DNA of 64,000 bases, taken from positions 744,001 through 808,000 of the forward strand of contig JAKMXF010000321.1 in the NCBI GenBank assembly GCA_024704765.1, read 5' to 3'. Under the pieces are notes generated by a model. It was not told the DNA's origin. It did not search any database and worked only from the letters and a program-made list of their open reading frames with translations. Below, piece after piece: positions 3,539 to 34,122 of the stretch (positions within the stretch are counted from its first letter, which is position 1; each line of letters starts with the position of its first letter). Source of the stretch: Oopsacas minuta. Taxonomy: Eukaryota > Animalia > Porifera. The translations under genes were made by a program, and so were the position numbers.

Positions 3539-3934
3539 TATTCGGTTGGGCTACTATTCATCAAGACTGATATTTGGTTCGATCGGTTTCAACCCTAGAA
3601 AATATCCACGAAAATTATCCAAATTTTATGGAAATCTACTAATCTTATCTCGCTCTGAGTAAGGGATTAGAAATTAGAAAAGTAATTAAGGGAAATATCT
3701 AATTGAATATCTTAGAAGGATTCAAATAGTAATACATAATTACATAATTGATATGAGCTATGACGTACTTAATTAAAATATGTGACAAATGTCTGCACCG
3801 CATAATAGGAGGAATAATATCCAAATTATCCTATGATATAATTACAAATATTGTATTAATAATTAATAAATCGGTTTAATTTAGTATTTATAGCAATACT
3901 GTTCTCTATACGTGAGAAATCTTTACAAGATCTT

Positions 3935-4701
3935 TGCTCGATAGGATCACACGCATTTACTAGTGTTATATATATCAATAGATCTATTGATATTTTTATG
4001 AAAATTATTTCCTTGTTAAGTGATTTTTCATTTTCCATGATGATTTGGTTGTTTGGTGCTTCTCTTCTCCATTTGAGCTTTGCTGCTAGAAATCAGTTGA
4101 AGATTAAAATTGTTCTTCGATTCATCTTAATAGGAATATTATTTAATCTAATAATGGTGATATTTGTGTCTTTCCGTCTACTCAAATATTCGGTATTATC
4201 GCACAAAACCTGATGGATCAAATCAGTTTCTTTATTGTACTCGACATAGCTAAGAAGAGATTCTTTCCTGCCATGAATAGTCGTGTTATAGATGCATATC
4301 ATCTCCATAGTACTAATGTGTATCTACAACAGAAGAGATTGCTCAAACAGTATAAGGTACTAGTCTTTGTTTTCTTGTTCACATTTGAGTTATATATTCT
4401 GAAGGATCTTTTCTTGTGTAACTTCTTTGTGATATTAGATTCAATCTCTCTAAACCCTTGTTTGTTTCATGCGACATATATCCCTGTGCTCATAATATCA
4501 GAATCTACAAAGGGTACTCTTACACTAGTGAGCAATTTCTTTACTTTATTCGCCCACATAATTGACCTTATTGTATGCTTTAATTTCATCCTAGTAAATT
4601 TGGAAATTATGTATGCGAAGGCTGAAAGATGCATCAAGAGGTGGATTTATGACACAGACAAATATCGTTATAAAGTCTGTTCTGATCCTTTATTGCCTTG
4701 A
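3935..4701 (+). pseudogene. Orphan 7TM family copy A: lacks N-terminus/TM1-TM2 and has a frameshift near 4165
   Basis: ORFs 3998-4213 and 4213-4701 align to TM3-4 and TM5-7 of copies B/E. The upstream tacgtgagaaatctt...gatctttg block matches copy B's 5' flank but is joined directly to loop-2 coding sequence. Confidence 0.8.
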
Positions 4702-5656
4702 TTAGAAATTACAAAAGGAAATGACTATATTTTAATTCATTTGTCTGCATTTTATGTTTCTTGTTAGTGTAAATTGAAATATTCAGACCTGAGTTTGATT
4801 ACTACTGAATGATAATGATTACGATTATGACTACACTCTTCAAAAATTGTTGGACTATGATTACAGGAAATGTTGTAATCGATTACAATCGATTGCAAAT
4901 GTAATTATAATTATCAGCCCCAAGCCTGTTATAATCTATGCCATTATAATAATCCTTAAAATCTATAATGTACAGTGAGCGATATTCCACTGTTAGTCTA
5001 TTAGCAATTCGTTCACTGGTCCAAAGATCCAAATTTTAAGCAAATTTCATGATGTGCATTGTTTATACGTAATTGTTGCAATTTCGGGAATATAAATTTG
5101 GATATTTCTTTTTGGTTTGAATTAATACGGTCTAAAGTGTAAACAGTTTGCTAAACATATTTCACTAGAGGCTCGAAATACAACTTGGTATAGAAATTCC
5201 TCAGTCAATAATAATTAAATGGAGTAATGAGTAAACCTTGGATAGAAGGTGGACCAATTCACAAACAGGTAAATGGGTCAAATAAGTGGATGGTTACTAT
5301 GTATGAAATAAGTATTGTGAGCGAGCATAGAGAGAGAGAGAGTAAACAGTTTAGCTGATACAACGGAGAGTAAATTGTGTCCACTCGCTGTGATACACAT
5401 AACCAGTTAAGGGAAATGTCAAACTATAGTAATCCAGGAGTATTACATAGTAATTGATATTCCCCACTGAATTAATAGGTGCTAATGCTTGCACTGGTAA
5501 TATAAGAAAGAATATCCAAATTATCCTAAAATAGAAGTTACAGGATATTTACCTGTAATTTGCAATCTAGTAATCTATCTAATTAAGTATTTATACCAAT
5601 ATAGTATGTATACGTGAGAAATCTTCAAAAGATCTTTGAGAAGCAGAATAATTGGG

Positions 5657-6772
5657 ATGAATAACAGTTCTTATCTACACACAGAACTCCACATTCTAAA
5701 GAAAACTAGGTCTATAGGGAAGCTAATCGGTGTGGGATTAATACTAACCTATATCATATTATGCCTCGTGTGGTTACCCTATGTTATAGCCAGGATTTTC
5801 TCACGAGTTAGAAACAAAAGGAGACTCATTACTTTAATGAGTCTAGATAGTAGTTGTGATTATACGTATCGTCTCTTTGTCCAGAAGGAAGATATTTTCC
5901 GGTATGTTATATTTCTTGTATTTCTTTGCTTTGAGCTGATGTGCTGCTTGAGTATAACTATATTTGGAGTCATAATAGAACTCAAGTTAAGCTTTAATAT
6001 GATTCCAGTTGGTCCGAACTGCTCAGTAAATTCGAAAACATTCAGCAGTTTTTCTTATGATATTCAGAAATTTCTCCTTTTGTTCGATGCTTTTTCATTT
6101 TCCATGATGCTTTGGTTGTTTGGTGCTCTGTTTCTTCATTTGAGTTTTGCAGCTAGAAATGAGTTGAAAATAAAAATAGTGCTGCGCTTCATCTTGTTTG
6201 GGATACTTATTAATCTCATCATATTAATATTCTCATGTATTCGATATACCAGCATTTTCGGTGTCATCATACGAAGTTTGATGGATCAAATCAGTTTCTT
6301 TATTGTGCTTTACATAGCTAAGAAGAGATTCTTTCCTGCCATGAATAGTCGTGTTATAGATGCATATCATCTCCATAGTACTAATGTGTATCTACAACAG
6401 AAGAGATTGTCCAAACAGTATAAGATGCTTGTCTTTGTTTTCTTGTTCTTATCCGAATTAGTTATCCTGAAATTTATATGTTTTTATGATTTGTATGCAA
6501 TAATTGAAACAATCTCTCTAAATCGTTGTTGGTTTCAAGTAACCAATCATTTCCCTATACTCATGATATCAGAATCTTCAATGGGCACACTTACTCAAAT
6601 CAGCAGTTATTGCTTGACATTCAATGACTTGATTGATCTTGTTATATATTTTATATTTATTATTGTAAACTTAAACATTATGTATGTCACAGCTAAGAGA
6701 TGCATTAAGAACAGGTTTTATGACAGAGAAAGATATCGTTATCATGTCTGTTCTGATCCTTTATTGTCTTGA
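5657..6772 (+). CDS. Orphan 7TM family copy B (intact, intronless, ~371 aa)
   Basis: Seven hydrophobic segments; N-terminal NNSS sequons; basic loop after TM1 (RNKRR); loop Cys (NCS; RCWF); start taken at ATG 5657. Confidence 0.85.
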   Translation: MNNSSYLHTELHILKKTRSIGKLIGVGLILTYIILCLVWLPYVIARIFSRVRNKRRLITLMSLDSSCDYTYRLFVQKEDIFRYVIFLVFLCFELMCCLSITIFGVIIELKLSFNMIPVGPNCSVNSKTFSSFSYDIQKFLLLFDAFSFSMMLWLFGALFLHLSFAARNELKIKIVLRFILFGILINLIILIFSCIRYTSIFGVIIRSLMDQISFFIVLYIAKKRFFPAMNSRVIDAYHLHSTNVYLQQKRLSKQYKMLVFVFLFLSELVILKFICFYDLYAIIETISLNRCWFQVTNHFPILMISESSMGTLTQISSYCLTFNDLIDLVIYFIFIIVNLNIMYVTAKRCIKNRFYDRERYRYHVCSDPLLS

Positions 6773-8130
6773 TTTTGGAAATTACAAACAGAGTATAACT
6801 AGATTATTGCTATTTGTATGCATTCTATCTTTCTTAATTGTAGTGTATTGCAATATTTAACAAAAATAAGCACACTATACACTATGTAACAATGTTGCAT
6901 CAAGATTAAACTTTTTCATCCAACCTGCTTTCATCGTGTATAGTGGGCTTTAGGGTTTGTTTATGTTCCAAAGTAAATTCGTGACCTGGGATACTCACTA
7001 TATATCGTGGGCGGAAAGCATACTTATGTGCAGGGACGTCGCCAGGATTTCACCTAGGGGGTCAAAGAAATGTAGTCTTGATTTAGATATTGATAACAAT
7101 GTCCAGCCTCGATCAAGTGATTTAATCACGGAATACTGAACACTGAAGAATTGACAACTATCAATCTACGGGGAAATGTATTTTCCACAGTGAAACGAAA
7201 ACTACCTCTCTAACTAACTAACTAATTTTGTTGTACAAATTTTCGGTCAAGTTTGAGAATTGACAAAACCAGAGAATTGATATATCCGAGTTGGCAATAA
7301 CTGCGTACATCCATTTACACGCTGAATAGATTCCATATATTATACAAGTTTCGTTAAAAAAAAGCCTATAAAAATTCATGCAGAGAGCTTTGGATATATG
7401 TATAATGCCAACCTGGTAAAGAAAAACGCGGGACCAGATGTACTAATTAAGGGAGACACCGCGGGACGCAAATTCAAATTCTCCTGAACTATATAAAAGC
7501 GGGACAATTTAGGTTTTTGGGAAGTTTTGGTGAGATATTAGCCACAGACATGTTCGAAAGCATCGGGGCAGTTGGAATGTATATACTATATGTCACGAGT
7601 TCAATTAATACAACATATGTAGTTTCATGAACAAATAGTGAAATGCAACTTTTCATATCCGACAACATTCTATTACTGCTACTGCTACTATGTAAGTACA
7701 ATAGGATATTACTAACAGACAATTCCTTACAACACATCTTCCATTACACAATATGCAATTATATTAATTTAGTTCATTTCATAATACCTTGGGACTATTA
7801 GATAATTCTATTATACTGTTATTGCAAAAGTTCTTCAACAAAACAAAACATTAATAGTGAAAGCCCTAATAAGTTTTGGTATTAGTTACAAAGTACATTT
7901 AATAAAGGTAATTCCTAAATATTGCACAATTATATCCGTAAGCATGTATTCAGTATGTGAGCTCTTACAGTCATATATATAATTGTAATGTTTTACAAAT
8001 TTCTTTCTAAGGCTTAGGATTTTTGTAATCAGTATTAATGACAAAATAATATTAACAAATATTACATTACGAACCCACGTGAATATATTTGATGTTCGCC
8101 AGCCAGTATTATAATATTGATTGAGTATAA

Positions 8131-9261
8131 ATGACAAAAAATAATTTTAGTAGTGAAAATGGATTCTAAAAGAGTTTTACAAACATTATACAACATTAAT
8201 ATATCATTTAGTGTATGTAACAATTGTCTCGCGATAATAGGCATACTGTATTCAGTTTGGAAACTATTTCATATCCTGAAAAAGAAGAGATATGTTAATG
8301 CTATGGGAAAGAAGTTTGGATATGAAACTTGTAAATGGAAATACATTGAGAAGCAATTGAGAATTACATTATTTCTGATGCTACAAATCATAGAATCGCT
8401 GTATATAACATTGTATAACACAGAATCTATCCTCAGGAAGGCATATATAAGTTCGTTTTCTGGGAAAGATATTAGTATATCGAATGATTGTGTTCTTATC
8501 AACGGAACGTATTTATCCAATGAATACGATACCAGCAATTCTGAAATAGCATATAACGTGATGAAGAGTATTCAACAGGCTCTATTCTTGTATGGACTAT
8601 GGATAGCCTGCATATTTCTATCTCACATTTGTAAGGCAATGAACAAACTTGTAGAACGAAAGAAATTTGTCACATGCTCATTATTAGGTAGTATAGGAGC
8701 AGTAATTGTATTTGTGGTTAACAGTATACCAGTTCTCAGACTTATAGGCTTCCCTTTGCTATGGTGCTCAGTCAGATTATATTAGTATTTGCAATGTTAA
8801 AAGCTTGGAAGTATTTATATCTTTTCTATCAAAAAAACAAAGCTTTTCACTTTAGCTATTCTACAACCTCACCATACATGCAGCACAAAGCATGGTTATT
8901 CAAACAATACTTCATTGTTATATTTACTCTAGGGATAATATTCCAACTCTATATAATGGGGGACTTATGTGACGTAGTGTATATAATCGAAGAAACTTTG
9001 ATAAAAAACCCATGCTGGATCAAGAAGACTTTAAACATACATGTATCTTCTCCAAATCTGGTTCTGCTAAATAGGTTGAATACCTCCTATATTGTGGTTA
9101 GGTTTTCTTCAGTGATTTTCAAGTTACTTTTCAATATCGGAGTGAGCATCATACAGGTGTATATTCTTGTGTGCTATATTTATGGAAGGAAGAAACCCAA
9201 GCGTAAAATCTCTATTAATAACGATTATTCATTGTCAAGTTCTCTGTTACCTGAATCATGA
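8131..9261 (+). pseudogene. Orphan 7TM family copy C, highly divergent; one frameshift near 8758 and possibly a second near 8160
   Basis: ORFs 8153-8785 and 8761-9261 retain family landmarks: TM2 Glu, ISNDC..NGT loop, FKQY, FQLYI, NPCW and terminal SLL. An out-of-frame ATG at 8131 gives MTKNNFSS, resembling the family N-terminus. Could be an intact gene with consensus errors. Confidence 0.65.
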
Positions 9262-9974
9262 TGATATCTAAACTGGTGATAGAAATTATGAAAATAATAT
9301 TTATTAGACATTAAGTCTCACGGAAATTTACATTCCATATTATTTGCTATACATAAAGTCCAGTTTTTATCAGGAAAATTTGTGTAAATTCTATTATTAA
9401 TATGAATTATTGTGTGTGTTCGTATTTGAATGAATTTAATAATCAGTCTGGATTCAATTACAAATCTGTTGTTCGTGAGTGGACTTAATCACTTTTCGAG
9501 GTAAATATAGAAAGTATAGGCCAGTCAAATAAATTAATAATTGTGTGTTAAGGACTTGTTGACTGGATACAACAAAATAAATACTCAAGACAGCGTTATT
9601 ATATTTAAACCTGATTAATTTACATAGGGAATCTATAAATTTACAATATCGTAACAAACATGGCTACAGTCCTGTTTACTCATTTAAGTATTCTCGGGTA
9701 TTAAATATAATTGTAAATAAATATACAAAATGTAAATAAGAAGATATATAAATACATACAAATGAATATATAGACATGTAAAATCATAGAGCATCATATA
9801 CGACTTGGTTATAGAATGGAAAGAAGAGAACTATACAAGAAGAGAGAACTGGAAATGGGAAGAGACCTATACAAGTAGAGAGAACTAGAAATGGGAAGAG
9901 AGCTATACAAGCAGAATAAATATATTATTGGGTGTGATCAGTAGAAGCATTAGATATAAGTGGATTCTTCAAAT

Positions 9975-10272
9975 ATTCAGAATTGTAACGATACCTCAGT
10001 GCTTATCTATATGCGATTACAGATTCTATTAGCAATAATCCTTACTGGTTCCACGTCACCTATCATGTCTCTATGTTCACTATACCAGATTCTACTAAGC
10101 AGATTCTTAATCAAATCAGCGATTATTGTTTTGCATGTATTCGCTTGATTGATCTTGTTGTTTACTTAAATTTTATTCTTGTAAATCTAAATATTATGTA
10201 CGTCACAGCCAAGAAGTGTTTTAAGAGAAAGATATCGTTATCAAGTGTGTTCTAATCCTTTATTATCCTGAT
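9975..10272 (+). pseudogene. Orphan 7TM family copy D, 3' fragment (late TM6 to C-terminus)
   Basis: One frame reads LYAITDSISNNPYWFHVTYHVSMFTIPDSTKQILNQISDYCFACIRLIDLVVYLNFILVNLNIMYVTAKKCFKR, homologous to the B/E C-terminal third; ends in ..cctttattatcctga like B's ..cctttattgtcttga. Confidence 0.75.
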
Positions 10273-10809
10273 TAGAAGTAGCTTTATTATATTTAGTATC
10301 TATGTTTGTTAATATTTCCTCATGATAGTTAACCTTGTATATATTAGTCAATAATTAACAGAATTGGTTATATTCTTCTGGGTTATGCAATTACTGGGAA
10401 TATATTTAACTTTTCCCATATCACATATAATTCACCTAGTTAGGAAGTATCCCAAAACATAAGTGATTTTGGGTTCCAATCTATATTTGTATAATTATAA
10501 ATACGGATCGGTGTTATCATATGATTAGTGATAACAGTAAAGTATATTTATGATTAGTATACTATAATCAAATCGTATTAGCCTTTATTATACATGTATA
10601 CAATTGTTAAACTTATAATTACTTATGATGTAAGATTAATTGAAACTTTTGAAACTTTTGAACCTTCTAAAAATAATGTCATAAATGTTATGATAGAAAC
10701 AACTTTCTATATAATACAATTATACTATCATTGAGGGTATAATCATATCACAAGATAAGTATAATTCAACTATAAAAGAACAAATATAAGATTGAACTTA
10801 AGACATACG

Positions 10810-11997
10810 ATGAATAACTCTACTGACATAATAAGTAATAAAGATCAAAATACAGAATTTTTTTCTATTTGGAATTCTGTTGATGATAACATCTATCATC
10901 TTGACCAAGCATTAGCAATAGTGTACACATTCTTGTGTGTATTCTGGTTAGTTTATGTCGTATTAGATCTAGGATCACAATTAAGATACAAGAAGAGACT
11001 TGTAATATTAACTTTGTGCTACAAAGACGATTATAACAATCGTATTTTCATCCAAAATGAGAAAATACAACGCAATTCTGTTTTTTTGCTTTTTCTCTGC
11101 TTTGAACTTACATACAGTCTAATAATAAATATTTATGGGTTCGTATATATGTTGTATATTCCTGAAATTATTAGAATCTCAATTGGCCAAAATTGTTCTC
11201 TGTATTCGGAAAGTTTTCTCGGGACTACATATGACACTAGATTTATGAATATATTTCTGAATATTATCTCTTTGTTTGGTGATTTTTCATTTTTCATGAT
11301 GATTTGGTTGTTTGGTGCTTCTCTTCTCCATTTGACTTATGCTGCTAGAAATGAGTTGAGGAGTAAAAGTCTCCTTCATTTCATCTTAATAGGCATGCTT
11401 ATCAATTTTGTTACAGTGGCCGTAGCATATATTCCATATACTAGCCTATTCGGTACCATAGCACAGAGTTGGATGGAACAAATCAGTTTCATCATTGTGC
11501 TTTTCATTGCTAAGAAGAAATTCTTTCCTGCCATGAATAGTCGTGTTATAGATGCATACCATCTCCATAATACTAATGTGTATCTACAACAGAAGAAATT
11601 GTTAAAACAGTATAAGCTGCTTGTTTCATTCTTCTTATTTACCTTTGAGCTATACATCTTTAAGAATATTTTCTTCTTCAATTTGTATGCCATTTTCCAA
11701 TCTATTTGTGTAAATCCTTGTTGGTTTAATGTGACCTATCAAATACCGATGTTCACCATATCAGAGTCCACAAATATTCTTCTTCATAAAATCAGTGCCT
11801 ACTTCTTAATATTCGGACATATTATTGACCTTATCGTCTATATTGATTTGATTCTAATCAGTCTACTTTTCATATATATCACTTCAAAGAGATACCTTCA
11901 GAGAAGATACTGCGATAGCAAAAAAGATCATTATCGTTATCAAGTATATTCTACACGTACTACACCCTTATTATCTGCTGCTGAAAAACATTATTGA
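10810..11997 (+). CDS. Orphan 7TM family copy E (intact, ~395 aa)
   Basis: Seven hydrophobic segments, MNNST N-terminus, NCS and NPCWFNVT loops, conserved FFPAMNSRVIDAYHLH loop; start ATG 10810. Confidence 0.88.
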   Translation: MNNSTDIISNKDQNTEFFSIWNSVDDNIYHLDQALAIVYTFLCVFWLVYVVLDLGSQLRYKKRLVILTLCYKDDYNNRIFIQNEKIQRNSVFLLFLCFELTYSLIINIYGFVYMLYIPEIIRISIGQNCSLYSESFLGTTYDTRFMNIFLNIISLFGDFSFFMMIWLFGASLLHLTYAARNELRSKSLLHFILIGMLINFVTVAVAYIPYTSLFGTIAQSWMEQISFIIVLFIAKKKFFPAMNSRVIDAYHLHNTNVYLQQKKLLKQYKLLVSFFLFTFELYIFKNIFFFNLYAIFQSICVNPCWFNVTYQIPMFTISESTNILLHKISAYFLIFGHIIDLIVYIDLILISLLFIYITSKRYLQRRYCDSKKDHYRYQVYSTRTTPLLSAAEKHY

Positions 11998-12397
11998 TAA
12001 TATATTATAACCAATGGATGTACTACAGTTACTTAATATATTATATATTTTGGAAAATTAATGAAAATTAATAAAAATAATTTAGTGTATGAAAAAATGA
12101 GAAAGAAATTTTATAGATAGAATAATATGAATGTTCACATGTCGATGGGTTACATGGGTGATCACTAGATGTAATCCATTTGAAGTTATGCTGCTATTTA
12201 TGTCATTTTGCTGAGACTTCAGAGATGTAATAAAATACTGATTTTATCATAATTTGGTGAATAATTATCCAGTGAATAATATACTCTAAATATTCATTTT
12301 CACGAACAAAATAATAGTCATATAAACATACAAGTCTGAATATTAAAGAAACGAAAGTTATACAATTATAACAGATAAAAGCAGATATTAATGTATG

Positions 12398-13582
12398 CTA
12401 GGAGATGAGAGATCTAGTCAGCTGGTTGTTATCCACACGATATCTTCTGTAACCTGAGCGAACCCGTTTTGCTAAACTGAAGATGACGCAACATATAGCT
12501 GCGATATTAATCGCAATATAAGAGGAATATCCTATAATATCAAACAAATGCACCAACATTAGAAAATATCCTTCAGCAGATACTAATGTATTTACAGTAT
12601 TAACATATAAATTGATGGTAGAAGCATGGAATGTGTTACGGAACCAACAGGGATCCAAGCTAACAGATTCAGAAGCTAGAAAAACAGCATAGAATATGAC
12701 ATCTCTCAAAATGAAGATTTGGAATATGAGCATTAAGAAAATGATAAGTAGCTTAAAATGACGTGTAAACCTCTTCTGTTTCTTATACACACTAGAACTA
12801 CATACACCTTTTCTATTTACAACACGACTATTGATTGCTGGAAAGTATCTCTTCTTAGCAATGTAAATCACAATAAAGTAACTGACAATACTCAATAAAA
12901 TCTGTGCAATCTTACCGAAAATAATTGTATAAGGAACAATCATGAATAATAGAGTAACCACATTTAACACTGTCCCGATTAATAGGAATTGAGATACCTC
13001 TTTCAATTTCAGTTTATTTCTAGCTGCATTACTTAAGTGCAGGAGGGCAACAGCAAACAGCCAAATCATCATAGAAAATGAAAAATTCTCCAAACAGAAC
13101 AAGCAATTGAGGAATACAATTATCGATTTATCCTCGTACATTTCTGTAATGAATATATCTGATTTTGTAATACATATATTTTCTATAGGGAGTATTGTAG
13201 ATGGTAAAATGAATGTTAGTAAGCTATATAACATACCATAAATGTTAGTAGAGAGACAGAATAACAACTCAAAGATGAAAAACAGAAGAAAAATGGAAAA
13301 TCGAGTAAAAGTTTCATCAATCCTGAATATTTCATCTTGAATTTGATAATCATCAAATAATAACTTCTTTCTTAACAATAATTTTTTCCTCAAATTTAAA
13401 ATCAAAACCGAAACAGCATAGATTAACCAGAAAACACAGCTAACCGTATAGATAGATTCTAGGATATGAATTGGATAATACCAGTGATCCTTAAAGCTAT
13501 CCAAATTGAGATATCTTGGGTCTGTCTTGTTGAGAGATATTTGGATAGAATCCTTGACAGATGGTTGGCTAGCATTTTCCAT
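12398..13582 (-). CDS. Orphan 7TM family copy F (intact, 394 aa)
   Basis: Shares FSFSMMIWLF, AARN, YIAKKRYFPAINSRV and DPCWF motifs with B/E; seven TM segments. Confidence 0.88.
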   Translation of the reverse strand: MENASQPSVKDSIQISLNKTDPRYLNLDSFKDHWYYPIHILESIYTVSCVFWLIYAVSVLILNLRKKLLLRKKLLFDDYQIQDEIFRIDETFTRFSIFLLFFIFELLFCLSTNIYGMLYSLLTFILPSTILPIENICITKSDIFITEMYEDKSIIVFLNCLFCLENFSFSMMIWLFAVALLHLSNAARNKLKLKEVSQFLLIGTVLNVVTLLFMIVPYTIIFGKIAQILLSIVSYFIVIYIAKKRYFPAINSRVVNRKGVCSSSVYKKQKRFTRHFKLLIIFLMLIFQIFILRDVIFYAVFLASESVSLDPCWFRNTFHASTINLYVNTVNTLVSAEGYFLMLVHLFDIIGYSSYIAINIAAICCVIFSLAKRVRSGYRRYRVDNNQLTRSLIS

Positions 13583-14232
13583 TTCACTTTTACAAATACA
13601 TACAATATTCTGTTCTAATGAATTAACTTAAAATTTAGTATTTTGTATTTGTATATGTTTACATTAATAGGATACATTACATACATGCTTGATTATTTGG
13701 TAATCACTCACGTGCTAGTATGTAATGCTTTTAATATATCAGTATTATGTTTATTGGAATATATAGGGATATTACAGAATAGTTTATTGTATGTCAATGT
13801 TTAGGGATATATATATTATATAGAAAATGTGATGTAATTGTGCAAGTATCATGTTCCACTAATCTAAGAATATCGAGATACTTTATCTTACACAATAATT
13901 GTCAAGTAAATATATTGACAGAACTTATATACGATTAATCAACAATGGTTATCTCTTGAATACAAGTAAATACCATGAAGATAATGTTTGTAAATTGGAG
14001 CAGTTCAAACTTCAAGTACAGTTACCTATAGAGGTGTAAGGCAGCAAAGTGACAGTTCCATCAATTTGTATTGCAAAAACCCTACCACTGTTAAGGGAGG
14101 GTAAAATCTTCAGGAATTTTGCGTTATCTTTTATATACCACCACTCTATACATAAAGTTACAAATATTTATAAATTCACTTTACACAATTGAACTATTAC
14201 AAAGAAGAAGTATATTTGCTATATGAATGGCA

Positions 14233-15462
14233 TTAATTGTCAGTAATAATTACTCTGCTATTGCTGTCTTGTTGAGTAGACTGTGAGAGTAATTGTTTTG
14301 AAAGTCCAGAAAATTGATATATTCTGCGATTACAAAACACATCTCTATGAGAGCATAAACAAATCTGATATATTAATGCTGCTAGATTGAGTATGGTTAA
14401 ATTACTGTAGACAAACATTTCTATAAACCTGTTACTAACCAACAAATAACTACAAATATTCACCAGATTATGAATAATTGTATCAGACAGCTGAAACATC
14501 GGAAGATGATACGTAACATTAAACCAACAAGAGTTCAAACTCACAGAATTCAAGATAGCATAGGGTAGGTGAAGGAACGTATCTTTGAGTGTATACAACT
14601 CTAAACTAGTCAAGAGCAAGAAAACAACCACTTTATATTGTCTGAATAATCTCATCTGTTTCTGACACTCTTTCTCAATACACAAATTGTACTTCTCAAG
14701 GATACGACTAACCATGACAGGGAAATACTTATTCCTTGCAATATATAATACAATAAAGAAACTGGTATTGTCCATCAAATTCATTAGAATGAAGCCGAAC
14801 AGACTTATGTATGGAATCACAGATAATATTGAAGTGATGAGACTGATGACAGTGCCTAACAATACAAATCGGACCACTACTCTAACTTCTATCATATTTC
14901 TAGCGGAATAATACAAATGGAGTAGAGAAGTACTGAACAACCAGAGCATCATGGAAAACGAGAATTTCCTCAAAGAAGATAGAAAATTATGAAATATACT
15001 TCCTAACCTGTAGTCATAATATTGTACAAGAAATGAGTTAGACACCAAACTACAGTTATTGCTTATCTGTATTGACATAGAAGGCAGATATGATATTGTT
15101 GTTACGAATAATATTCCGTGTATGTTAATGGAAAAACAGAAACTAAATTCAAACATAATGAATAATAGGAAAATGGCATTTTTAACTATACATTTGTGTT
15201 GGTATGCGATTTTCTCCTGAATACCTTCCTGGTTAGCTGAGTATCTAGCTGATCTGCGTACTAAACCTTGCTGTTTATAATGGAAATGTATTTCTCGAAA
15301 TAAGTAAATTATCCAAAATACACAACTAAGCAAATACACAAAGCTTACAGCTATTATGAAATAATTAGCATCATCTAATACATGCGAGAGAACAAAAGTT
15401 CTCGTACTATTAGAATATTTGGCTAGTGACATGTAATGTACAAGTATTATATAATTAAGCAT
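14233..15462 (-). CDS. Orphan 7TM family copy G (intact, 409 aa; alternative ATG at 15432)
   Basis: Shares ISNNCS, FSFSMMLWLF, ARNKYFPVMVSR and NSCWFNVTY motifs; seven TM segments. Confidence 0.88.
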   Translation of the reverse strand: MLNYIILVHYMSLAKYSNSTRTFVLSHVLDDANYFIIAVSFVYLLSCVFWIIYLFREIHFHYKQQGLVRRSARYSANQEGIQEKIAYQHKCIVKNAIFLLFIMFEFSFCFSINIHGILFVTTISYLPSMSIQISNNCSLVSNSFLVQYYDYRLGSIFHNFLSSLRKFSFSMMLWLFSTSLLHLYYSARNMIEVRVVVRFVLLGTVISLITSILSVIPYISLFGFILMNLMDNTSFFIVLYIARNKYFPVMVSRILEKYNLCIEKECQKQMRLFRQYKVVVFLLLTSLELYTLKDTFLHLPYAILNSVSLNSCWFNVTYHLPMFQLSDTIIHNLVNICSYLLVSNRFIEMFVYSNLTILNLAALIYQICLCSHRDVFCNRRIYQFSGLSKQLLSQSTQQDSNSRVIITDN

Positions 15463-15859
15463 TAAATGTGCGTATATTTATATGGAAAGTATTTCTACTT
15501 GCTTTACGTGTATTGGATTTTTCATTAAAGATTGCGTAATATTAGTAATTCAATCATGGAAATATTCGCTTATATTATATGACTAATTGATTATATAACC
15601 TTACCTAATTTCTAATATTTTCTGTGCAAATATTGCATAAAGTTATCTTAACAGCTGTAAACAGAGGTTGACCAAGATGGACCAAATCATCAAATCTAAA
15701 ACGTGAGATATATAATATTCTAACTATTTTATTTTGAAATGTACAATTTTGCTATGAATAGGGAAGAATTTTGTAGTCAGGGCAGATGAGAAATCAGGAG
15801 AACTACGATAAAATTTTAATAGTTGAGAAGCTGTCATAAATGATGTATACATACCATAT

Positions 15860-16400
15860 ATCAGAGAAAATCGGTGAAAATATTAATACAATAAATGGCA
15901 AAAAGTATTCAATCAAACTTTGTGTGATGACACCGAAAATACTAGTTACCGGAATAAATGAGATTAATAAGTATTCCAAACAAGATGAAGACAGCACTAT
16001 TTTTATTTTCAACTCATTTCTAGCTGCAAAACTTAACTGGATAAGCAGAGCACCAAACAACCAAATCATCATGGAAAATGAAAATTACCAGACAAGGAAA
16101 TTAAAATCTTAAAAGTCGATGAATGTTTTGGAATTTACTGAGCAGTTCGGACCAACTTAAGATTACATTAACCCTTAACTTAAATCTAATATGACTTCGT
16201 ATATAGTTATACGCAAGCAGCAGATCAGCTCAAAGCATATAAATACAAGAGTGATAACTTACCAGAAATTAGTTTCTTCTTCATGAAGAGACGATTCGAA
16301 TAATTACAACTACTATCTAGATGTATTAAAGTAACAAGTCTCCTTTTATTTCTAATTTGTGAGGATATGTTAAGGGTGACGTAGATTATCTACACATAAT
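15860..16400 (-). pseudogene. Orphan 7TM family copy H, degenerate TM1-TM4 remnant close to copy B
   Basis: Reverse complement aligns to 5800-6230 (e.g. ggtccgaactgctcagtaaatt; atgatgatttggttgtttggtgctctg; gctagaaatgagttgaaaataaaaatagtgctg) with multiple indels and stops. Confidence 0.75.
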
Positions 16401-17935
16401 ATATTGTAGATAAGTTCAAAACCCAGACCAATGGAAGATATTATGTATAACCAGGACAAGCTGGCCTACGGGGAGAACGGGAGATTTCCAGATGGCCGGT
16501 GGGTCGGTGGGCCAGTGAGCTGGTATAAACCCTTCTGTGTAGTGTATGATTTTCAAAACACCATAGAAAACAACTGCAAACGACGATTTCAGATATGGGA
16601 GTATTTCAAGGCCTGCTCACTATAATGACCATTTTGCCCATTTCCTATTGTCAATTTATTACTGTAATCTATTTTCCAAAATATATTTACTCCTTATCTG
16701 GCTGTCTGGGCTACAGTAGAGGTCGCAAGCTCGGCGTATTCTTGCATTCTAATTAGCACATGTTAGAGTATAAAATTTGATAGTACAAGACTATCCCAAT
16801 TGATAAACGGACATAAACACTCATATCTGCAAGAGCAAGACATTTTGACACCTATTACGTAGAGTTTTTAGAGATCTCATTTAGATCTTAGAATTTATCA
16901 CATTCCGCACACATGATAAATAACTAGCCTCTAGCTCTTACTTACCTGTTCCTCAATCAGTTCTATACAAATAACCAAAAATGTGACTTTCAGTTTCTAT
17001 TTTTAGTGAAGTGGGTTGGTTTAAAAATTGACCTGGGCCGAATTATTGACCAGTCCGTCCCTGCGTATAACATATGAAATATTGCATAGACCTTAAACAT
17101 AATAGCTGAATTAAAAGGAAAACCTTTTACTTTTTTAGGGAAATATATATGTATATCAATTTTCATGTTAATCCGACTGCTAGATTTCGCACGGCCGCGC
17201 GGATAGACGTACAGACGTAGTACATCGTCCATACCATTATGGCAGTTCATTATAAAACTGCAATAAAAATTGCTCAAGTTGCAAGCTTGGCCATCTGTGG
17301 GTTCGAGAGCTCTGATTTAGGTACAGCATACATTTCATTGAATATGTAATAAATACCACATAGCACATGCGCGTGTTGTGTCAAAGCTTGTGCAACGTTT
17401 GTGCACAGACAGAACGACATTTCTCTGCTGCTTGTTGTTCAAGTGTATACATTAATTTGAGTTGTTGTCTAGTTTATTTACCTAGGATTAGTTGAAAAGA
17501 AGGCTTGGATGTTGTTCTAGTTTATATTAACACGCTATTTGTGATAATTACTCTCGAATATACATGATAAGTGCACAGAGTGAGTCATCTGTGCTGTGTT
17601 CACAAATTTCACTGTTTTGACCATTATTTACTACTTGTACACTTTCTTACAATTTTTTTCTATGGCTTTTTCAGTCATTATATCTTGGTTATACTTTTTA
17701 CTGTAACATAGAGTGAATACATATTCTAAATCTGAAATAATATGATAACATAAACCCGTACAAACTAAAGAATTATCATAACTTTGTCCCGCTGAAACAT
17801 GTGCACATCAAATCATCTCAGACTCTCAGTAATATGTAATAACAATAACTCTCTCGTAGATCAACTCTATAAATTGTGTAAAATATCGAGATTTATTTGG
17901 ATTAGCAAATCTAGAGGTTTAATGGCTTGTTGTCA

Positions 17936-18035
17936 CGTACAAGAAATGAGTTAGAAACCTAAGTACAGTTATTACTTATCTGTATTGAGATATAAGCTAG
18001 ATGATATTATTGTTAAGGATAATTCCGTGTATGCT
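17936..18035 (-). pseudogene. Orphan 7TM family fragment I (~100 bp of the loop-2 region of copy G)
   Basis: gtacaagaaatgagttaga..acagttatt.cttatctgtattga..tag..g..agat.atatt.ttgtta.g.ata.attccgtgtatg matches 15024-15124. Confidence 0.65.
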
Positions 18036-18200: not shown

Positions 18201-20159
18201 TTATTTCTTCCTGACAGCTATCCTAAGTGCAACATAAGTAAGAGTGAAGAAGAACATCGTATGAATAACTAGACCAAGGGGACCATTCCACAGGTCCCAT
18301 GCAGTCTCATACATAATCAGCTGTGAATCTAGAAACGATTCTCCTGAGATATAACTATCTACTGAGATAGATTTGTAGACATGATACGTCTCGTGAAGAC
18401 ATGTACCATTGCCTGTCAGATTCCTGATTGAAGGAAGACAGAACTCCAAATCAGTTAGCTCGTTAATTAGTAAGGTTTTAACACCTAATCTTACAATACT
18501 AAAATATTTGAGTGCTTCACTCGGGAATGGAATTAGATTGTAGTTGAAATTACCGCCTATAACTACCATGAACATGAACAAGAATTCAGGACCGATTATG
18601 GTAAGATATATGTTATTTGTTAGTGCACTGAAGAACATAGTAATACTACTAGCACTATACAGCACTAACTGTAGTGATAGGATGTATAGAAGATAACTAG
18701 TCACTGATAGTTTGAATCCAAACATGAAGTATAGAATTGTAGAAGCTACGAATGAGCTTAATACTTTAGAAGGAAAGAACTCTGGTAACATCTGACCAAA
18801 TACATAAGGAAGTGTGCGGTAGTAGCCTTGTTGATGCTCATGAATGAATTGTTGCTTTCTAGCATGGATACTACGTGTGCCTGTTGCAAGCCCGAATAGG
18901 TGATGTAGTATTACCATAGTAAATAGTCCGTAGCGATCATGCAGACCCGCTGGAGTCAATGGAGACTGTAGGAGAATTAAGCCAAACAGCATATAACCTA
19001 GACTAGCTAATAATGTGTGGGTAAGATAAGCTAATGGAGATCTCCCTACAACACGAGAAGATCTCAGTAGAGTTATAAGGAACTGCCATATGAAGCTAGT
19101 TGGGTATCTCACTACTCTACTGTTGGATGTATACGTTTTGCATCTATGGATATCTTCTAGCTGTTTGTACAACTCATTGTAGTTATGAGATGAAATGTAT
19201 TGTGTTGCTAATCTCCTCTCATTATATTCGGTTTCTATTTCGTGCATCTTAAGTTGATTCTTTAGAAATCGAGATTCTCTTACAATCAGATCCAAGAAGA
19301 AGTCTCCAGGATTTTCTTTCTCCTCACACTGATAACCTATCTCAGAGAAATAACCAGTAACATCTGTCCACTCTCCGTGATATACTGTCTCACCAGCTGA
19401 CAACAGAGTCACACGGTCCAACAGTCGGAGGATGGCATAACGGGGCTGGTGGAGTGTCACCACGATTAAACGACCTTCCTGAGAGAGAGTCTTCAGCTGA
19501 CGCATTAGTTTCAGAGCTGTGTAAGCATCTAGACCGGAAGTGGGTTCATCCAGGAATAGAATGGAAGGTGCGATTACCAACTCCGTGGCTATGTGAGTTC
19601 GTTTCCTCTCACCACCAGATACACCTCTGGAGAAATCTGTCCCTATTCTAGAGTCTGCTACCTCACTTAGACCCAATTTATCAATAACCTCCTCTACCAA
19701 TCTAGCTCTCTGCTGTCTATCACTCTCTCCCTGACTGAGACTACGCTTTGAGAGTCTCAGACTAGCAGAGAAGTGAATGTTCTCTCTCACACTCAACACT
19801 CCCTCTAGGAAGTCCTGCTGCACCACGTATCCAGCCATGAACCTGAAATGATCCGGTTGTGGTTGTCCGTTTACTCGAATGTCTCCAGTGAATCTTCTAT
19901 GACTAATGCGTCCTGCTAACAGATCCATGAGTGATGTCTTTCCACTCCCTGTTGGTCCGAGAATAGCATTGAGACCTGACCTAAATATGCCACTCACTGA
20001 CTGGAGAACTGGTTTTGGACGAGAAGACAAGCAGACATACCTCCTTTGAGGTACAGAGTAACTCAGATCCTGGAAACTTACCTGCTTCACTTTCTTTCTG
20101 TCAAATTCGTAGCTGAGATCATCATCTGTTAACAAATATCTCTTTTGAGGATCCATCAC
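18201..20159 (-). CDS. ABCG-subfamily half transporter (NBD-TMD), 652 aa, ABCG2/White-like
   Basis: Walker A GPTGSGKTS, Q-loop YVVQQD, signature VSGGERKR, Walker B/D-loop LFLDEPTSGLD, H-loop TLHQP, then six-TM ABC2 membrane domain; intronless. Confidence 0.93.
   Translation of the reverse strand: MMDPQKRYLLTDDDLSYEFDRKKVKQVSFQDLSYSVPQRRYVCLSSRPKPVLQSVSGIFRSGLNAILGPTGSGKTSLMDLLAGRISHRRFTGDIRVNGQPQPDHFRFMAGYVVQQDFLEGVLSVRENIHFSASLRLSKRSLSQGESDRQQRARLVEEVIDKLGLSEVADSRIGTDFSRGVSGGERKRTHIATELVIAPSILFLDEPTSGLDAYTALKLMRQLKTLSQEGRLIVVTLHQPRYAILRLLDRVTLLSAGETVYHGEWTDVTGYFSEIGYQCEEKENPGDFFLDLIVRESRFLKNQLKMHEIETEYNERRLATQYISSHNYNELYKQLEDIHRCKTYTSNSRVVRYPTSFIWQFLITLLRSSRVVGRSPLAYLTHTLLASLGYMLFGLILLQSPLTPAGLHDRYGLFTMVILHHLFGLATGTRSIHARKQQFIHEHQQGYYRTLPYVFGQMLPEFFPSKVLSSFVASTILYFMFGFKLSVTSYLLYILSLQLVLYSASSITMFFSALTNNIYLTIIGPEFLFMFMVVIGGNFNYNLIPFPSEALKYFSIVRLGVKTLLINELTDLEFCLPSIRNLTGNGTCLHETYHVYKSISVDSYISGESFLDSQLIMYETAWDLWNGPLGLVIHTMFFFTLTYVALRIAVRKK
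19299..20080 (-). repeat. Left arm of 782-bp inverted repeat (NBD coding tract shared by the two ABCG genes)
   Basis: Reverse complement matches 21805-22586 at every position I compared; the ORF track shows the identical 65-aa antisense ORF in both arms. Confidence 0.9.
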
Positions 20160-21743: not shown

Positions 21744-23681
21744 ATGGCAAATTTAGAATTGTCTAAAAACGGTAATAATTACAATTGTAACAATTTGGAC
21801 CAAATAAGTTTCCAGGATCTGAGTTACTCTGTACCTCAAAGGAGGTATGTCTGCTTGTCTTCTCGTCCAAAACCAGTTCTCCAGTCAGTGAGTGGCATAT
21901 TTAGGTCAGGTCTCAATGCTATTCTCGGACCAACAGGGAGTGGAAAGACATCACTCATGGATCTGTTAGCAGGACGCATTAGTCATAGAAGATTCACTGG
22001 AGACATTCGAGTAAACGGACAACCACAACCGGATCATTTCAGGTTCATGGCTGGATACGTGGTGCAGCAGGACTTCCTAGAGGGAGTGTTGAGTGTGAGA
22101 GAGAACATTCACTTCTCTGCTAGTCTGAGACTCTCAAAGCGTAGTCTCAGTCAGGGAGAGAGTGATAGACAGCAGAGAGCTAGATTGGTAGAGGAGGTTA
22201 TTGATAAATTGGGTCTAAGTGAGGTAGCAGACTCTAGAATAGGGACAGATTTCTCCAGAGGTGTATCTGGTGGTGAGAGGAAACGAACTCACATAGCCAC
22301 GGAGTTGGTAATCGCACCTTCCATTCTATTCCTGGATGAACCCACTTCCGGTCTAGATGCTTACACAGCTCTGAAACTAATGCGTCAGCTGAAGACTCTC
22401 TCTCAGGAAGGTCGTTTAATCGTGGTGACACTCCACCAGCCCCGTTATGCCATCCTCCGACTGTTGGACCGTGTGACTCTGTTGTCAGCTGGTGAGACAG
22501 TATATCACGGAGAGTGGACAGATGTTACTGGTTATTTCTCTGAGATAGGTTATCAGTGTGAGGAGAAAGAAAATCCTGGAGACTTCCTGCTTGATACTAT
22601 CTTCAAGGAAAAAAACAAGGATAATAAAATAGGTGAAAGATATATCACAGATAATCAGATGATCAAACTTAGCACAAAATTCAATGCTTCGAATCAAAAC
22701 CAGCATTTAATGGCTACATTGGAAAATATTCATTCAAATAATATAGCATCTCCTAGCAAACCTTCAGCTCGTTATGCTACTAATATCTTCTCACAGATGC
22801 TGACTTTATCTAACAGGACAATGCGTGTATTCCTTCGCTTCCCATATCCAGAAATCCTACAGTTTATATTCAACATACTAGCTATAGGGATTGTTAAGTT
22901 TTTTACCTGGAACACAGATTTATCATTAGATGGTCTTCAAAACAGACTCACTCTGACAATTGTACTTCTCTGTCTAATGTCTACAATATGTGCTCCTTAC
23001 TTAACTACATTCTTTTTCAGCAAAAAACAGTTATATTTCGAAACTAATCATTGCTATTACCGCGTGTCTGCATATTTCTTATCTAAAATCTTAACAGAGA
23101 TAATTCCTCGTTGCATACTACCAGCTCTACTAACTTCTTTCATATACTATTTTGTGCAAGGATTCGTGGTTGCTTGGGGAAATATAGGAATTTTCTTATT
23201 GGTTATCTTTTCATATACATTTGCGGAAACTGCCTTGATTAGCTTGATAGCAATGTCTAGTGGTGTTGAGTTTCAAGCTATGTTCCTAAAAGGCTACCTC
23301 TTGTTCATAATGGTATCTTTTTCTGGGTTCTTCTTCAACATTCAAGAAACTCACTTTATTCTAGAATATTTCACATATCTATCTTTCTATAGATTATCCT
23401 ACTCTACCATTCTAGCTAATGAATTGTCTGGACTAGATTTTTGTCATCCGATAGTACGGAATCTAACTGGAGATGGAAGCTGCCCTCATTTCGACTATAG
23501 AGTTAGTCCAGAAATAGTTTTAGAATCACACACCTCTGGAGATGATTATTTAGCTAAGCAGGGGATTTCTGTATCCAATCCTTTTGACATATGGATCGGT
23601 ATAATCCTCTTACTAGTGTATGGATGTATCTTATATTCCTTAACTTATTTGAAGCTTAGGTTATTCGCAAGAAAACAGTAA
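21744..23681 (+). CDS. ABCG-subfamily half transporter (NBD-TMD), 645 aa, ABCG2/White-like
   Basis: Same NBD motifs as the 18201-20159 gene; distinct N-terminus, linker and TMD; intronless. Confidence 0.93.
   Translation: MANLELSKNGNNYNCNNLDQISFQDLSYSVPQRRYVCLSSRPKPVLQSVSGIFRSGLNAILGPTGSGKTSLMDLLAGRISHRRFTGDIRVNGQPQPDHFRFMAGYVVQQDFLEGVLSVRENIHFSASLRLSKRSLSQGESDRQQRARLVEEVIDKLGLSEVADSRIGTDFSRGVSGGERKRTHIATELVIAPSILFLDEPTSGLDAYTALKLMRQLKTLSQEGRLIVVTLHQPRYAILRLLDRVTLLSAGETVYHGEWTDVTGYFSEIGYQCEEKENPGDFLLDTIFKEKNKDNKIGERYITDNQMIKLSTKFNASNQNQHLMATLENIHSNNIASPSKPSARYATNIFSQMLTLSNRTMRVFLRFPYPEILQFIFNILAIGIVKFFTWNTDLSLDGLQNRLTLTIVLLCLMSTICAPYLTTFFFSKKQLYFETNHCYYRVSAYFLSKILTEIIPRCILPALLTSFIYYFVQGFVVAWGNIGIFLLVIFSYTFAETALISLIAMSSGVEFQAMFLKGYLLFIMVSFSGFFFNIQETHFILEYFTYLSFYRLSYSTILANELSGLDFCHPIVRNLTGDGSCPHFDYRVSPEIVLESHTSGDDYLAKQGISVSNPFDIWIGIILLLVYGCILYSLTYLKLRLFARKQ
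21805..22586 (+). repeat. Right arm of 782-bp inverted repeat
   Basis: Runs from taagtttccaggatc to cctggagacttc; identity stops abruptly on both sides. Confidence 0.9.
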
Positions 23682-32700: not shown

Positions 32701-33357
32701 AAGTAATCAAGAAAAAATGAAACGAATCTGGGATAGGTTTGGTCAAGCAATCATAATCTACTACGCACAAAAAGGAATAGAAATGAAACATACACGATAT
32801 ACTTCTGTTGATGATAGTTACAATTCGTCATCTTCGCTTGACTACAATATCTGTTTCGTTATTGATGGAACCGGATCCATGCATACAGATATCAAGAAAG
32901 CAAGAAAATCTGTTAAAAAATTCATCAAGAACTACAAACAAAGAGGAAGTATATCAAATTTTAAAGTCGTTATCTATCGTGATCACTGTGATAAGACAGT
33001 TGTTGAAATGTTTCCGATTGGAAACAACTTTACTTCACAACACGAACAAGTTCAACAATTTCTTAAAGAAGTTAAGGCTACTGGTGGTGGAGACTATCCA
33101 GAAGCAGCATTGGATGGTCTAGCGACTGCAGCCACTAAATGTAAATGGAATACTCATACCCAAAATAGAAACATAATCATCCATATATTCGACGCACCAC
33201 CACATGGAGACTTTCCGAATTACAATCGACATAATAAAATGAGTGATAAATCAAACTGCTGTTGTTGTAATCATGGTACTTTGTGCCCGTTTGATTGGCA
33301 AAGAGATGTCTGGGACAGAATGAAAGAATTCCAAATCAAGTATTATGGAATAAATAC
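26707..33357 (+). CDS. Very large inducible GTPase (VLIG/GVIN1-like) with C-terminal VWA domain; ~2,260 aa if five single-base frameshifts are corrected; 3' end lost in the gap
   Basis: Six consecutive overlapping ORFs (26707, 27762, 29858, 30568, 31281, 32654). G1 GPQSSGKS (29373), G2 RCTRG, G3 DTEG; degenerate upstream P-loop GIGRAGWNQMGKS; CPNQCPSCGKFC...H...H motif; VWA MIDAS DGTGS, YRDH, GGGDYPEA, DAPPHG. Confidence 0.8.
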
Positions 33358-34122
33358 NNNNNNNNNNNNNNNNNNNNNNNNNNNNNNNNNNNNNNNNNNN
33401 NNNNNNNNNNNNNNNNNNNNNNNNNNNNNNNNNNNNNNNNNNNNNNNNNNNNNNNNNNNNNNNNNNNNNNNNNNNNNNNNNNNNNNNNNNNNNNNNNNNN
33501 NNNNNNNNNNNNNNNNNNNNNNNNNNNNNNNNNNNNNNNNNNNNNNNNNNNNNNNNNNNNNNNNNNNNNNNNNNNNNNNNNNNNNNNNNNNNNNNNNNNN
33601 NNNNNNNNNNNNNNNNNNNNNNNNNNNNNNNNNNNNNNNNNNNNNNNNNNNNNNNNNNNNNNNNNNNNNNNNNNNNNNNNNNNNNNNNNNNNNNNNNNNN
33701 NNNNNNNNNNNNNNNNNNNNNNNNNNNNNNNNNNNNNNNNNNNNNNNNNNNNNNNNNNNNNNNNNNNNNNNNNNNNNNNNNNNNNNNNNNNNNNNNNNNN
33801 NNNNNNNNNNNNNNNNNNNNNNNNNNNNNNNNNNNNNNNNNNNNNNNNNNNNNNNNNNNNNNNNNNNNNNNNNNNNNNNNNNNNNNNNNNNNNNNNNNNN
33901 NNNNNNNNNNNNNNNNNNNNNNNNNNNNNNNNNNNNNNNNNNNNNNNNNNNNNNNNNNNNNNNNNNNNNNNNNNNNNNNNNNNNNNNNNNNNNNNNNNNN
34001 NNNNNNNNNNNNNNNNNNNNNNNNNNNNNNNNNNNNNNNNNNNNNNNNNNNNNNNNNNNNNNNNNNNNNNNNNNNNNNNNNNNNNNNNNNNNNNNNNNNN
34101 NNNNNNNNNNNNNNNNNNNNNN
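33358..34122. other. Assembly gap (765 N)
   Basis: Run of N; the corresponding interval in the inverted copy (~62058-63106) is about 1,050 nt. Confidence 1.

Follow-up and report, generated by a model that had tools for sequence, protein, structure and literature searches.

A window of 64,000 nucleotides from the glass sponge Oopsacas minuta (contig JAKMXF010000321.1, hereafter C321, positions 744001–808000) contains a cluster of single-exon genes encoding seven-transmembrane (7TM) proteins, which very probably form a separate multigene family with the G-protein-coupled receptor (GPCR) fold, restricted to glass sponges. On balance, we read this family, whose members are predicted to carry the N terminus outside the cell (N-out), as a chemoreceptor-like or recognition repertoire of its own. 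A first-pass annotation, made from the letters of the sequence, had described an orphan, intronless and lineage-specific 7TM family in birth-and-death evolution here, and its claims were followed up computationally.

Copies were detected by tblastn with four intact proteins and by hmmsearch with two family profiles, using the six-frame translation of the window. The first-pass annotation had placed nine copies at 3935–18035; eight of them were recovered, at 3845–16431, with B, E, F and G intact and A, C, D and H broken, as described. The ninth, copy I (∼17.9–18.1 kb), was dropped, its match being confined to 22 residues at chance level (score 1.9, independent E-value 0.026). The additional copy J at 56.7 kb was found again by both methods and is also broken, which brings the count for the window to four intact copies and five broken ones. 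Full-length open reading frames (ORFs) align with relatives from end to end, bearing out the single-exon structure first assigned to these genes. Most Oopsacas genes have a single exon (PMC10282587, Table 1); in the window, whose G+C content is 29–40%, genes are mostly single long ORFs. Pairwise identity among B, E, F and G is only 34–50%, so that the cluster mixes old subfamilies and is not a recent tandem run.

By sequence, the family matches no named family in Pfam or the PDB, in agreement with the orphan status first given to it. Pfam scans of the four intact copies, of six other members and then of 80 members at E ≤ 10 returned scattered chance matches only, none of which recurred. Among these 80 members there was no match to 7tm_1 (PF00001), to Dicty_CAR (PF05462) or to Frizzled (PF01534); the family also lacks the cysteine-rich domain (CRD) and the linker of Frizzled proteins. 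When PDB sequences were searched with two family profiles, the outcome was either nothing or chance-level matches to CFTR and a designed helical protein. Comparison by hhalign with three GPR157-like/Dicty_CAR-like proteins of Oopsacas gave probabilities of 0.1–1.1%, a weak test with single-sequence templates. No prior description of the family or of its accession numbers was found in the literature, and it is not described in the Oopsacas genome paper (PMC10280926), the Aphrocallistes genome paper (PMC10282587) or a 2025 GPCR survey (PMC12716839).

The fold was examined in two structural models. An AlphaFold2 (AF2) model of copy E, built on a 30-sequence alignment, reached a mean predicted local distance difference test score (pLDDT) of 87.8 and a predicted template-modelling score of 0.85, and shows seven long helices, matching the seven hydrophobic transmembrane segments (TM1–TM7) first read from the sequence. 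In this model, the first extracellular loop (ECL1) forms a beta-hairpin with Cys135, TM4 and TM5 are linked by 1–2 residues, a short helix after TM6 bears a C-W-F motif, and TM1/TM2 and TM5/TM6 have long cytosolic extensions. The second model, of the L001 ORF (a genomic member ∼20% identical to E, 55-sequence alignment), has a pLDDT of 92.9 and the same plan. Both models have a second extracellular loop (ECL2) of 1–2 residues, as short as had been claimed, and the first intracellular loop (ICL1) is a helical hairpin of ∼33 residues. The N terminus, of ∼30 residues, contains no domain, and helix 8 is not seen in either model.

The models were compared exhaustively with 48,161 PDB representatives using VIA-align, whose guidance is that helical bundles scoring under a Z of ∼13 may have no more in common than their arrangement. 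Best Z values were 17.6 for E (FZD1, root-mean-square deviation 4.5 Å over 292 residues) and 16.5 for the L001 ORF, and each of the best 50 rows for either model was a GPCR (of class A, B, F or T), a domain with the GPCR fold or a GPCR-like fold obtained by design. A structure search of the ESM Atlas with E returned GPR143-like, GPCR-kinase, GPCR-PIPK and nematode Srx-type clusters, with template-modelling scores (TM-scores) of 0.53–0.60 (0.55–0.60 for the first three). With Foldseek, the 50 PDB rows listed were all GPCRs, with low global TM-scores and a best E-value of 2.4 × 10−3; as this value is just short of the mark, the fold claim rests on VIA-align and the Atlas search. The GPCR-like fold that had been proposed is thus recovered by structural alignment of the models, in which seven helices are laid out as in solved GPCRs, a layout that places the family in the GPCR-fold superfamily.

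For topology, model segments were projected onto a 206-sequence alignment. Lysine plus arginine amount to 23.6 per 100 residues in predicted cytosolic segments versus 3.8 in extracellular ones, NxS/T sequons occur at 3.4 per 100 residues outside versus 0.67 inside, and an N-terminal sequon is found in 93% of the close members. These distributions back the N-out topology suggested at first, with a predicted extracellular N terminus and cytosolic C terminus.

Several residues are conserved even in members at 12–20% identity: Trp52 in TM1, Glu105 in TM2, the Asn-Cys135 pair in ECL1, Cys310-Trp-Phe in the third extracellular loop (ECL3), and an Arg and Pro-Leu-Leu in the C-terminal tail (numbering of E in the 401-codon frame starting at 10792). 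The TM2 glutamate, already singled out by the first-pass annotation, is present in all 135 close members and in 56 of 65 distant ones, with Asp in four more, and is predicted to be buried. Likewise, the cysteines it had noted in ECL1 and ECL3 occur together in 212 of 226 members; nine have neither and five only one (Fisher P = 6 × 10−13, uncorrected for phylogeny). The co-losses span perhaps three to five independent lineages, so this P value overstates the evidence. ECL2 carries no cysteine, and to judge from this co-occurrence the pair probably forms a disulfide in place of the usual TM3–ECL2 bridge.

That DRY and NPxxY are lacking, as first reported, holds for the canonical motifs, but the main subfamily retains weak remnants of both. 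The cytosolic end of its TM3 reads AARNELR, within the second intracellular loop (ICL2), with an arginine at this TM3 end in 120 of 135 members, and the inner end of TM7 reads N-L-x-x-I-Y, with a spacing one residue longer than in NPxxY. Neither is conserved in distant members, in which the TM3 end is variable; in the main subfamily they may be functional analogues of the class A motifs. The C-W-F motif lies in ECL3, not in TM6. The cytosolic face is strongly conserved, comprising AARNELR in ICL2, the TM5/TM6 extensions (FFPAMNSRxIDAxH) and the R-Y...PLL motif of the tail (YRY...PLL).

To count the family genome-wide, the Oopsacas assembly (61.5 Mb, 365 contigs) was searched with the profiles, giving 49 matching pieces. 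All 17 loci fetched outside the window are intact, with ORFs of 359–401 amino acids, which together with B, E, F and G makes 21 intact genes; another 15 or so loci are broken. Almost all of the loci map to C321 at 660–1010 kb, with a few distant members at 336–350 kb. Profiles of other 7TM groups matched mostly large multidomain proteins in this genome: 7tm_1 1–2 times, Dicty_CAR 3, 7tm_3 21 and 7tm_2 59 times, the last being counted exon by exon and therefore corresponding to fewer loci, by our estimate about 40. Among the 7TM proteins of Oopsacas that are small and lack an ectodomain, the orphan family is thus the main set.

Relatives fell into 244 clusters in a word-indexed search and 132 in an exhaustive profile search of 1.84 billion representatives. 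Among 20 clusters looked up, the sole named source was Oopsacas minuta; the rest were on ENA or Logan contigs, many of 0.3–2.5 Mb. One member, P0019 (53% identical to E), is encoded on contigs of SRR11455650, a run that the supplement of PMC7426153 gives as a tissue metagenome of Vazella pourtalesii, a glass sponge. The COG4 gene of the window served as a yardstick of divergence: five ENA proteins are 80–85% identical to it, and one of these relatives, at 80% identity, shares the 418,925-bp contig ERZ25072740 with a family member. Its neighbours there, as also in the window, are two ABCG genes arranged head to head. From such sequences we infer that the ENA assemblies with relatives belong to other glass sponges, where the family numbers hundreds of members. 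Between species, receptor identity reaches only 50–56%, so that divergence is about three times as fast as for COG4. Named demosponges, calcareous sponges and other organisms gave no match, although sequence methods could miss very distant relatives. The lineage-specificity first suggested thus agrees with relatives traced only to glass sponges and to assemblies assigned to them in this way.

A maximum-likelihood tree was built with FastTree from 226 full-length sequences (340–460 amino acids), omitting fragments and five identical Oopsacas-derived duplicates. Two of its clades consist of Oopsacas sequences only, one with seven (B and D′, the intact counterpart of D described below, among them) and one with three, and clades of 58, 43 and 34 sequences have no Oopsacas member. 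One-to-one sisters from other assemblies exist for F, for G and for several distant members. This pattern indicates that the family combines retained old subfamilies with lineage-specific expansions.

Sequence variation is distributed unevenly across the membrane. In the main subfamily, mean column entropy is lowest in ICL2 (0.63) and in the third intracellular loop (ICL3) formed by the TM5/TM6 extensions (0.76), and highest in the N terminus (2.0), TM7 (1.9) and ECL1 (1.8); ECL3 and the outer helix halves are also variable. Recent Oopsacas paralogue pairs have gene-wide ratios of nonsynonymous to synonymous substitution rates (dN/dS, Nei–Gojobori) of 0.43–1.08 at dS 0.04–0.47, and an older pair 0.27; for copy B and its nearest paralogue the ratio is 0.54. 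The regional analysis of dN/dS that had been called for was pooled over five phylogenetically independent pairs and gave higher values in the outer half: 0.65 for extracellular segments and 0.67 for outer helix halves, versus 0.34 for inner helix halves and 0.40 for cytosolic segments (0.66 outer versus 0.37 inner), with 1.39 in the outer half of TM7. Nonsynonymous changes are 2.5-fold denser in the outer half (chi-square P = 10−11), and nonsynonymous to synonymous counts are 159:62 outside versus 72:50 inside (P = 0.016). This is the pattern expected of a diversifying ligand pocket joined to a common cytosolic partner, and the gathering of amino-acid changes on the outer side of the protein lends indirect support to the sensory or recognition role first suggested.

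Evidence for birth-and-death evolution came from a young inverted segmental duplication detected by blastn. Its left arm lies within the window, its right arm runs beyond the window's end, and the two are separated by a spacer of ∼24.5 kb. The arms are 98.2% identical in the receptor part (4.4 kb), 93.5% identical across 6.7 kb of the GTPase/VWA region and 88–96% identical close to the inner ends. The gene that has been lost is not the same in the two arms. In the right arm, a 1350-bp deletion has removed G except for its last 143 bp (the alignment jumps from window position 14375 to 15725), and the window arm has lost most of D through a ∼2.5-kb deletion (break at 10010–10012 versus 2482 extra bases in the right arm, where D′ is an intact 381-amino-acid ORF). 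Between E and its duplicate there are three synonymous changes and an indel of one codon; between F and its duplicate there are six nonsynonymous changes and no synonymous ones. Overall, 9 substitutions in 2373 bp of coding DNA compare with 21 in 1591 bp of spacer (∼3.5-fold lower in coding, P = 0.001), indicating that E and F are under constraint; gene conversion could contribute to the low coding divergence. With the intact and broken copies counted above in the window and the genome, these reciprocal losses uphold the birth-and-death pattern proposed for the family. Tandem clusters, many pseudogenes, lineage-specific expansions and outer-half variability, the features by which a chemoreceptor-type family was defined operationally, were all found.

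Table 1. Features of the window and of the adjoining part of C321 (window coordinates unless preceded by C321).
Feature	Coordinates	Strand	Description
Copy A	3845–4698	+	Broken; first ∼100 profile positions (TM1–TM2) missing or decayed; frameshift near 4168–4180
Copy B	5657–6772	+	Intact, single-exon, 371 amino acids from first ATG; profile 7–388, score 468
Copy C	8153–9261	+	Full-length, divergent subfamily (∼25% identity to E); single frameshift at ∼8758
Copy D	9989–10268	+	C-terminal remnant, ∼90 amino acids; profile 288–388 only
Copy E	10810–11997	+	Intact, single-exon, 395 amino acids; protein used for modelling
Copy F	12398–13582	−	Intact, single-exon, 394 amino acids; separate subfamily, 37% identity to E; profile score 420
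Copy G	14233–15462	−	Intact, single-exon, 409 amino acids; third subfamily; profile score 426
Copy H	15872–16431	−	Decayed fragment; profile ∼20–234 in two frames; 3 TAG and 9 TAA within the match
Copy J	56747–57855	+	Pseudogene, 66% identity to B; stop and frameshift near 57661–57676
Left arm of inverted duplication	9361–35892		Carries D, E, F and G; blastn
Right arm of inverted duplication	60407–64000, on through C321:808001–826111		blastn
D′	C321:822702–823835		Intact counterpart of D
ABCG half-transporter	18201–20159	−	Head-to-head with the next
ABCG half-transporter	21744–23681	+	Head-to-head with the preceding
Inverted tract of the ABCG pair	19293–20080 and 22593–21805		789 bp, 99.7% identical
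Overlapping ORF chain	26707–34153	+	URGCP-like/dynamin-type GTPase domain at 27762–29864, VWA domain at 32654–34153
Low-G+C segment	32001–34400		Lowest G+C of the window (0.237)
COG4	38412–40637	−	Single-exon, 741 amino acids

The broken copies listed in Table 1 differ in their state of decay. In copy A, hmmsearch recovered pieces in two frames (profile 101–212 and 209–387), and the upstream translation contains stops. Copy C consists of two overlapping ORFs that match profile positions 8–205 and then 206–373, without a gap and in different frames; there is no long homopolymer at the junction, and the copy is either a pseudogene or the product of an assembly error. The stop in copy J falls on the codon for the conserved arginine at the end of TM3; from its sequence we regard J as a young pseudogene. 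For B (5636) and E, TTG starts had been listed by the bacterial-code convention of the ORF tool, and the first ATG was taken instead. In the public proteome, gene E is represented only by a 232-amino-acid C-terminal fragment (P0001), and the paralogue LOD99_11768 (P0114) is called 'Odorant receptor' in UniRef, a name without backing from any Pfam model. Among 14 subfamily representatives, no k-mer exceeded shuffled controls as a shared upstream motif, and the spacing of poly(A) signals is uninformative in AT-rich DNA. A 1329-nt Logan contig (SRR29297748) holds exactly one family gene; it has no poly(A) tail and was not counted as evidence of transcription.

Other genes of the window were also noted. 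The inverted tract shared by the ABCG pair suggests gene conversion, and the position of this pair beside COG4 is conserved in a related assembly (L021). The chain of overlapping ORFs with GTPase and VWA domains is a giant gene split by frameshifts or short introns, or else a pseudogene. The low-G+C segment, which has long overlapping ORFs on both strands (33251–34327), is probably low-complexity or repeat sequence across the end of the VWA gene. Receptor clusters of related assemblies include transposase genes, FLYWCH/MULE at 14940–16286 of L005 and DDE_3/Transposase_1 at 11745–12641 of L006, which may aid rearrangement.

Other explanations were weighed against a family of its own. One is that these genes are a very divergent, sponge-specific expansion of a described GPCR class, Rhodopsin (class A) or Frizzled (class F), which we consider improbable. 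Structures of classes A, B and F fit about equally well (Z 15–17.6), FZD1 giving the longest alignment in both models; the TM3-end arginine and the N-L-x-x-I-Y of TM7 recall DRY and NPxxY, and the acidic TM2 residue recalls D2.50. Demosponge Rhodopsin-like receptors are also reported to be highly divergent (PMC4302439). However, no class stands out or ranks first by structure, no GPCR model of Pfam is matched by the 80 members, and hhalign gave a probability of 0.3% against the 7tm_1 protein of the sponge itself, a weak test with a single-sequence template. The ECL1–ECL3 cysteine pair, the near-absent ECL2 and the long ICL1 hairpin also argue against this origin, and as far as sequence can tell, every defining feature of known GPCR classes that was tested failed. 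A similarly small probability goes to 7TM proteins that reside in internal membranes and do not signal, like those of the GPR137, THH1/TOM1/TOM3, TPRA1 or GPR143 type, with a high copy number that has nothing to do with ligand sensing. Among Atlas matches are GPR143-like (TM-score 0.59), TPRA1 (0.49) and GPR137-like (0.49) proteins, and the conserved C-terminal PLL could be a di-leucine sorting signal. A language-model feature search placed E nearest to THH1/TOM1/TOM3 and GPR137 clusters (0.93; 180 of 256 features), with recognition below the threshold at which the tool is reliable. None of PF06454, PF27607, PF02101 and PF10160 is matched by any of the 80 members; PF02101 and PF06454 were also searched in the Oopsacas genome and yielded nothing usable for profile comparison. 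As a rule, housekeeping 7TM proteins are encoded by single genes that evolve slowly, and against this stand the intact and broken copies of the sponge family, its dN/dS of up to 1.08 in recent pairs (from 0.43) and its divergence relative to COG4. The sequons kept in the N terminus and loops on the predicted outside also speak against an internal-membrane role.

Two further explanations have a far lower standing. The genes could be mobile-element cargo, or non-functional relics multiplied by transposition; transposase genes (MULE/FLYWCH, DDE) do lie within clusters of related assemblies, many copies are broken, and a uniform single-exon structure is compatible with retroposition. Yet nucleotide similarity between copies is limited to the coding region plus a short stretch of 3′ flank, terminal repeats in common and an accompanying transposase are lacking, coding DNA is less substituted than the spacers between the duplication arms, deep subfamilies are matched one to one by sisters in assemblies of other glass sponges, and single-exon genes predominate in this genome anyway (PMC10282587), leaving this explanation a very slim chance. 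Slimmer still is the chance of seven-helix ion channels like the odorant and gustatory receptors (ORs and GRs) of insects, to which the name given to LOD99_11768 and the clustered, intronless, fast-evolving 7TM appearance would point. OR/GR-type channels have an N-in topology, which the N-out topology of the sponge proteins contradicts; 7tm_6 (PF02949), 7tm_7 (PF08395) and Trehalose_recp are unmatched by LOD99_11768 or any member scanned, and no OR, Orco or GR chain is among the best 50 structural matches of either model.

We therefore prefer a GPCR-fold family of its own, read as a chemoreceptor-like or recognition repertoire. The evidence tilts slightly towards its being a set of ligand-sensing surface receptors, in which the variable N terminus, the ECL1 hairpin, ECL3 and the outer helix halves would form the ligand-binding site. 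The ECL1–ECL3 disulfide would hold this site, and the buried TM2 glutamate would lie inside or beneath it. Ligands might be diverse extracellular cues, environmental, microbial or conspecific, whose binding would be relayed to the invariant surface of ICL2, ICL3 and tail and from there to one common cytosolic partner. This partner would most plausibly be a heterotrimeric G protein, because eight G-alpha genes are reported in Oopsacas (PMC10280926) and only 1–2 matches to 7tm_1 were found. Coupling to G proteins, for which the conserved cytosolic face and the reported G-alpha genes are indirect evidence, is possible, if somewhat short of an even chance.

Some observations weigh against the preferred reading. 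In the language-model search, the proteins nearest to E are endomembrane 7TM proteins rather than chemoreceptors, albeit with recognition below threshold. DRY, CWxP, NPxxY, the TM3–ECL2 disulfide and helix 8 are absent, so G-protein coupling cannot be assumed by analogy. A gene-wide dN/dS below 1 with higher values outside fits relaxed constraint equally well, and the contrast in nonsynonymous to synonymous counts between outer and inner halves is modest (P = 0.016), coming from about 340 substitutions. The glass-sponge identity of most ENA assemblies is deduced from their sequences, and the proposed function is read from anatomy and evolution.

Sponges have no neurons or sense organs, and glass sponges arrest their feeding current on water-borne stimuli. 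With 21 intact genes in Oopsacas, no other group of small 7TM receptors devoid of an ectodomain is as large as this family in the animal, which makes it the obvious candidate for stimulus reception. A bolder proposal, conceivable but unlikely, is that glass sponges alone evolved or retained a class-level GPCR family with an extracellular architecture of its own (the ECL1 hairpin bonded by disulfide to ECL3, and no ECL2), which serves as their main bare chemoreceptor repertoire and replaces the near-absent Rhodopsin class; if true, such a family could provide the sensory input for the syncytial action potentials by which the feeding current is halted. The extracellular lid is unusual, and the family is under-annotated.

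Among known systems, the best structural matches are FZD1 (8j9n), MRGPRD (9dqj), CX3CR1 (7xbx) and P2Y1R (7xxh), over 240–292 residues at 3.7–5.1 Å and Z 17–17.6, FZD1 heading the list only by a tie. The sponge family shares cytosolic extensions of TM5/TM6 and a conserved acidic TM2 residue with classes F and A, but identity is 6–10%, and CRD, linker, DRY, CWxP, NPxxY and helix 8 are missing. GPR137 and THH1/TOM1/TOM3, which are 7TM proteins of similar length and its nearest language-model clusters (0.93), differ in giving no match by hidden Markov model and a TM-score of 0.49, and they are low-copy and conserved whereas the sponge family is multicopy and fast-evolving.

The chemosensory GPCR repertoires of other animals (nematode srx/srt/srg, TAS2R, V1R and olfactory receptors) resemble it in consisting of bare 7TM proteins of 350–400 amino acids, encoded by single-exon genes in tandem clusters, with many pseudogenes, species-specific expansions and outer-half variability; TAS2R14 and nematode Srx/Srt clusters are among its structural neighbours. 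They differ in that no sequence or profile similarity links them to the sponge family, which has the ECL1–ECL3 pair, a near-absent ECL2 and the long ICL1 hairpin, and which would exert its putative chemosensory role in an animal without neurons or sensory organs. GPRch1-3, RSF and Hi-GOLD (eLife 2025, PMC12716839) are likewise sequence orphans with short unstructured termini, recognized mainly by 7TM clustering and predicted structure; they were defined from choanoflagellate queries, and that survey was not found to mention any family confined to glass sponges. For GPCR evolution, the glass-sponge family provides a further case of a family missed by sequence methods and recognized by structure prediction only.

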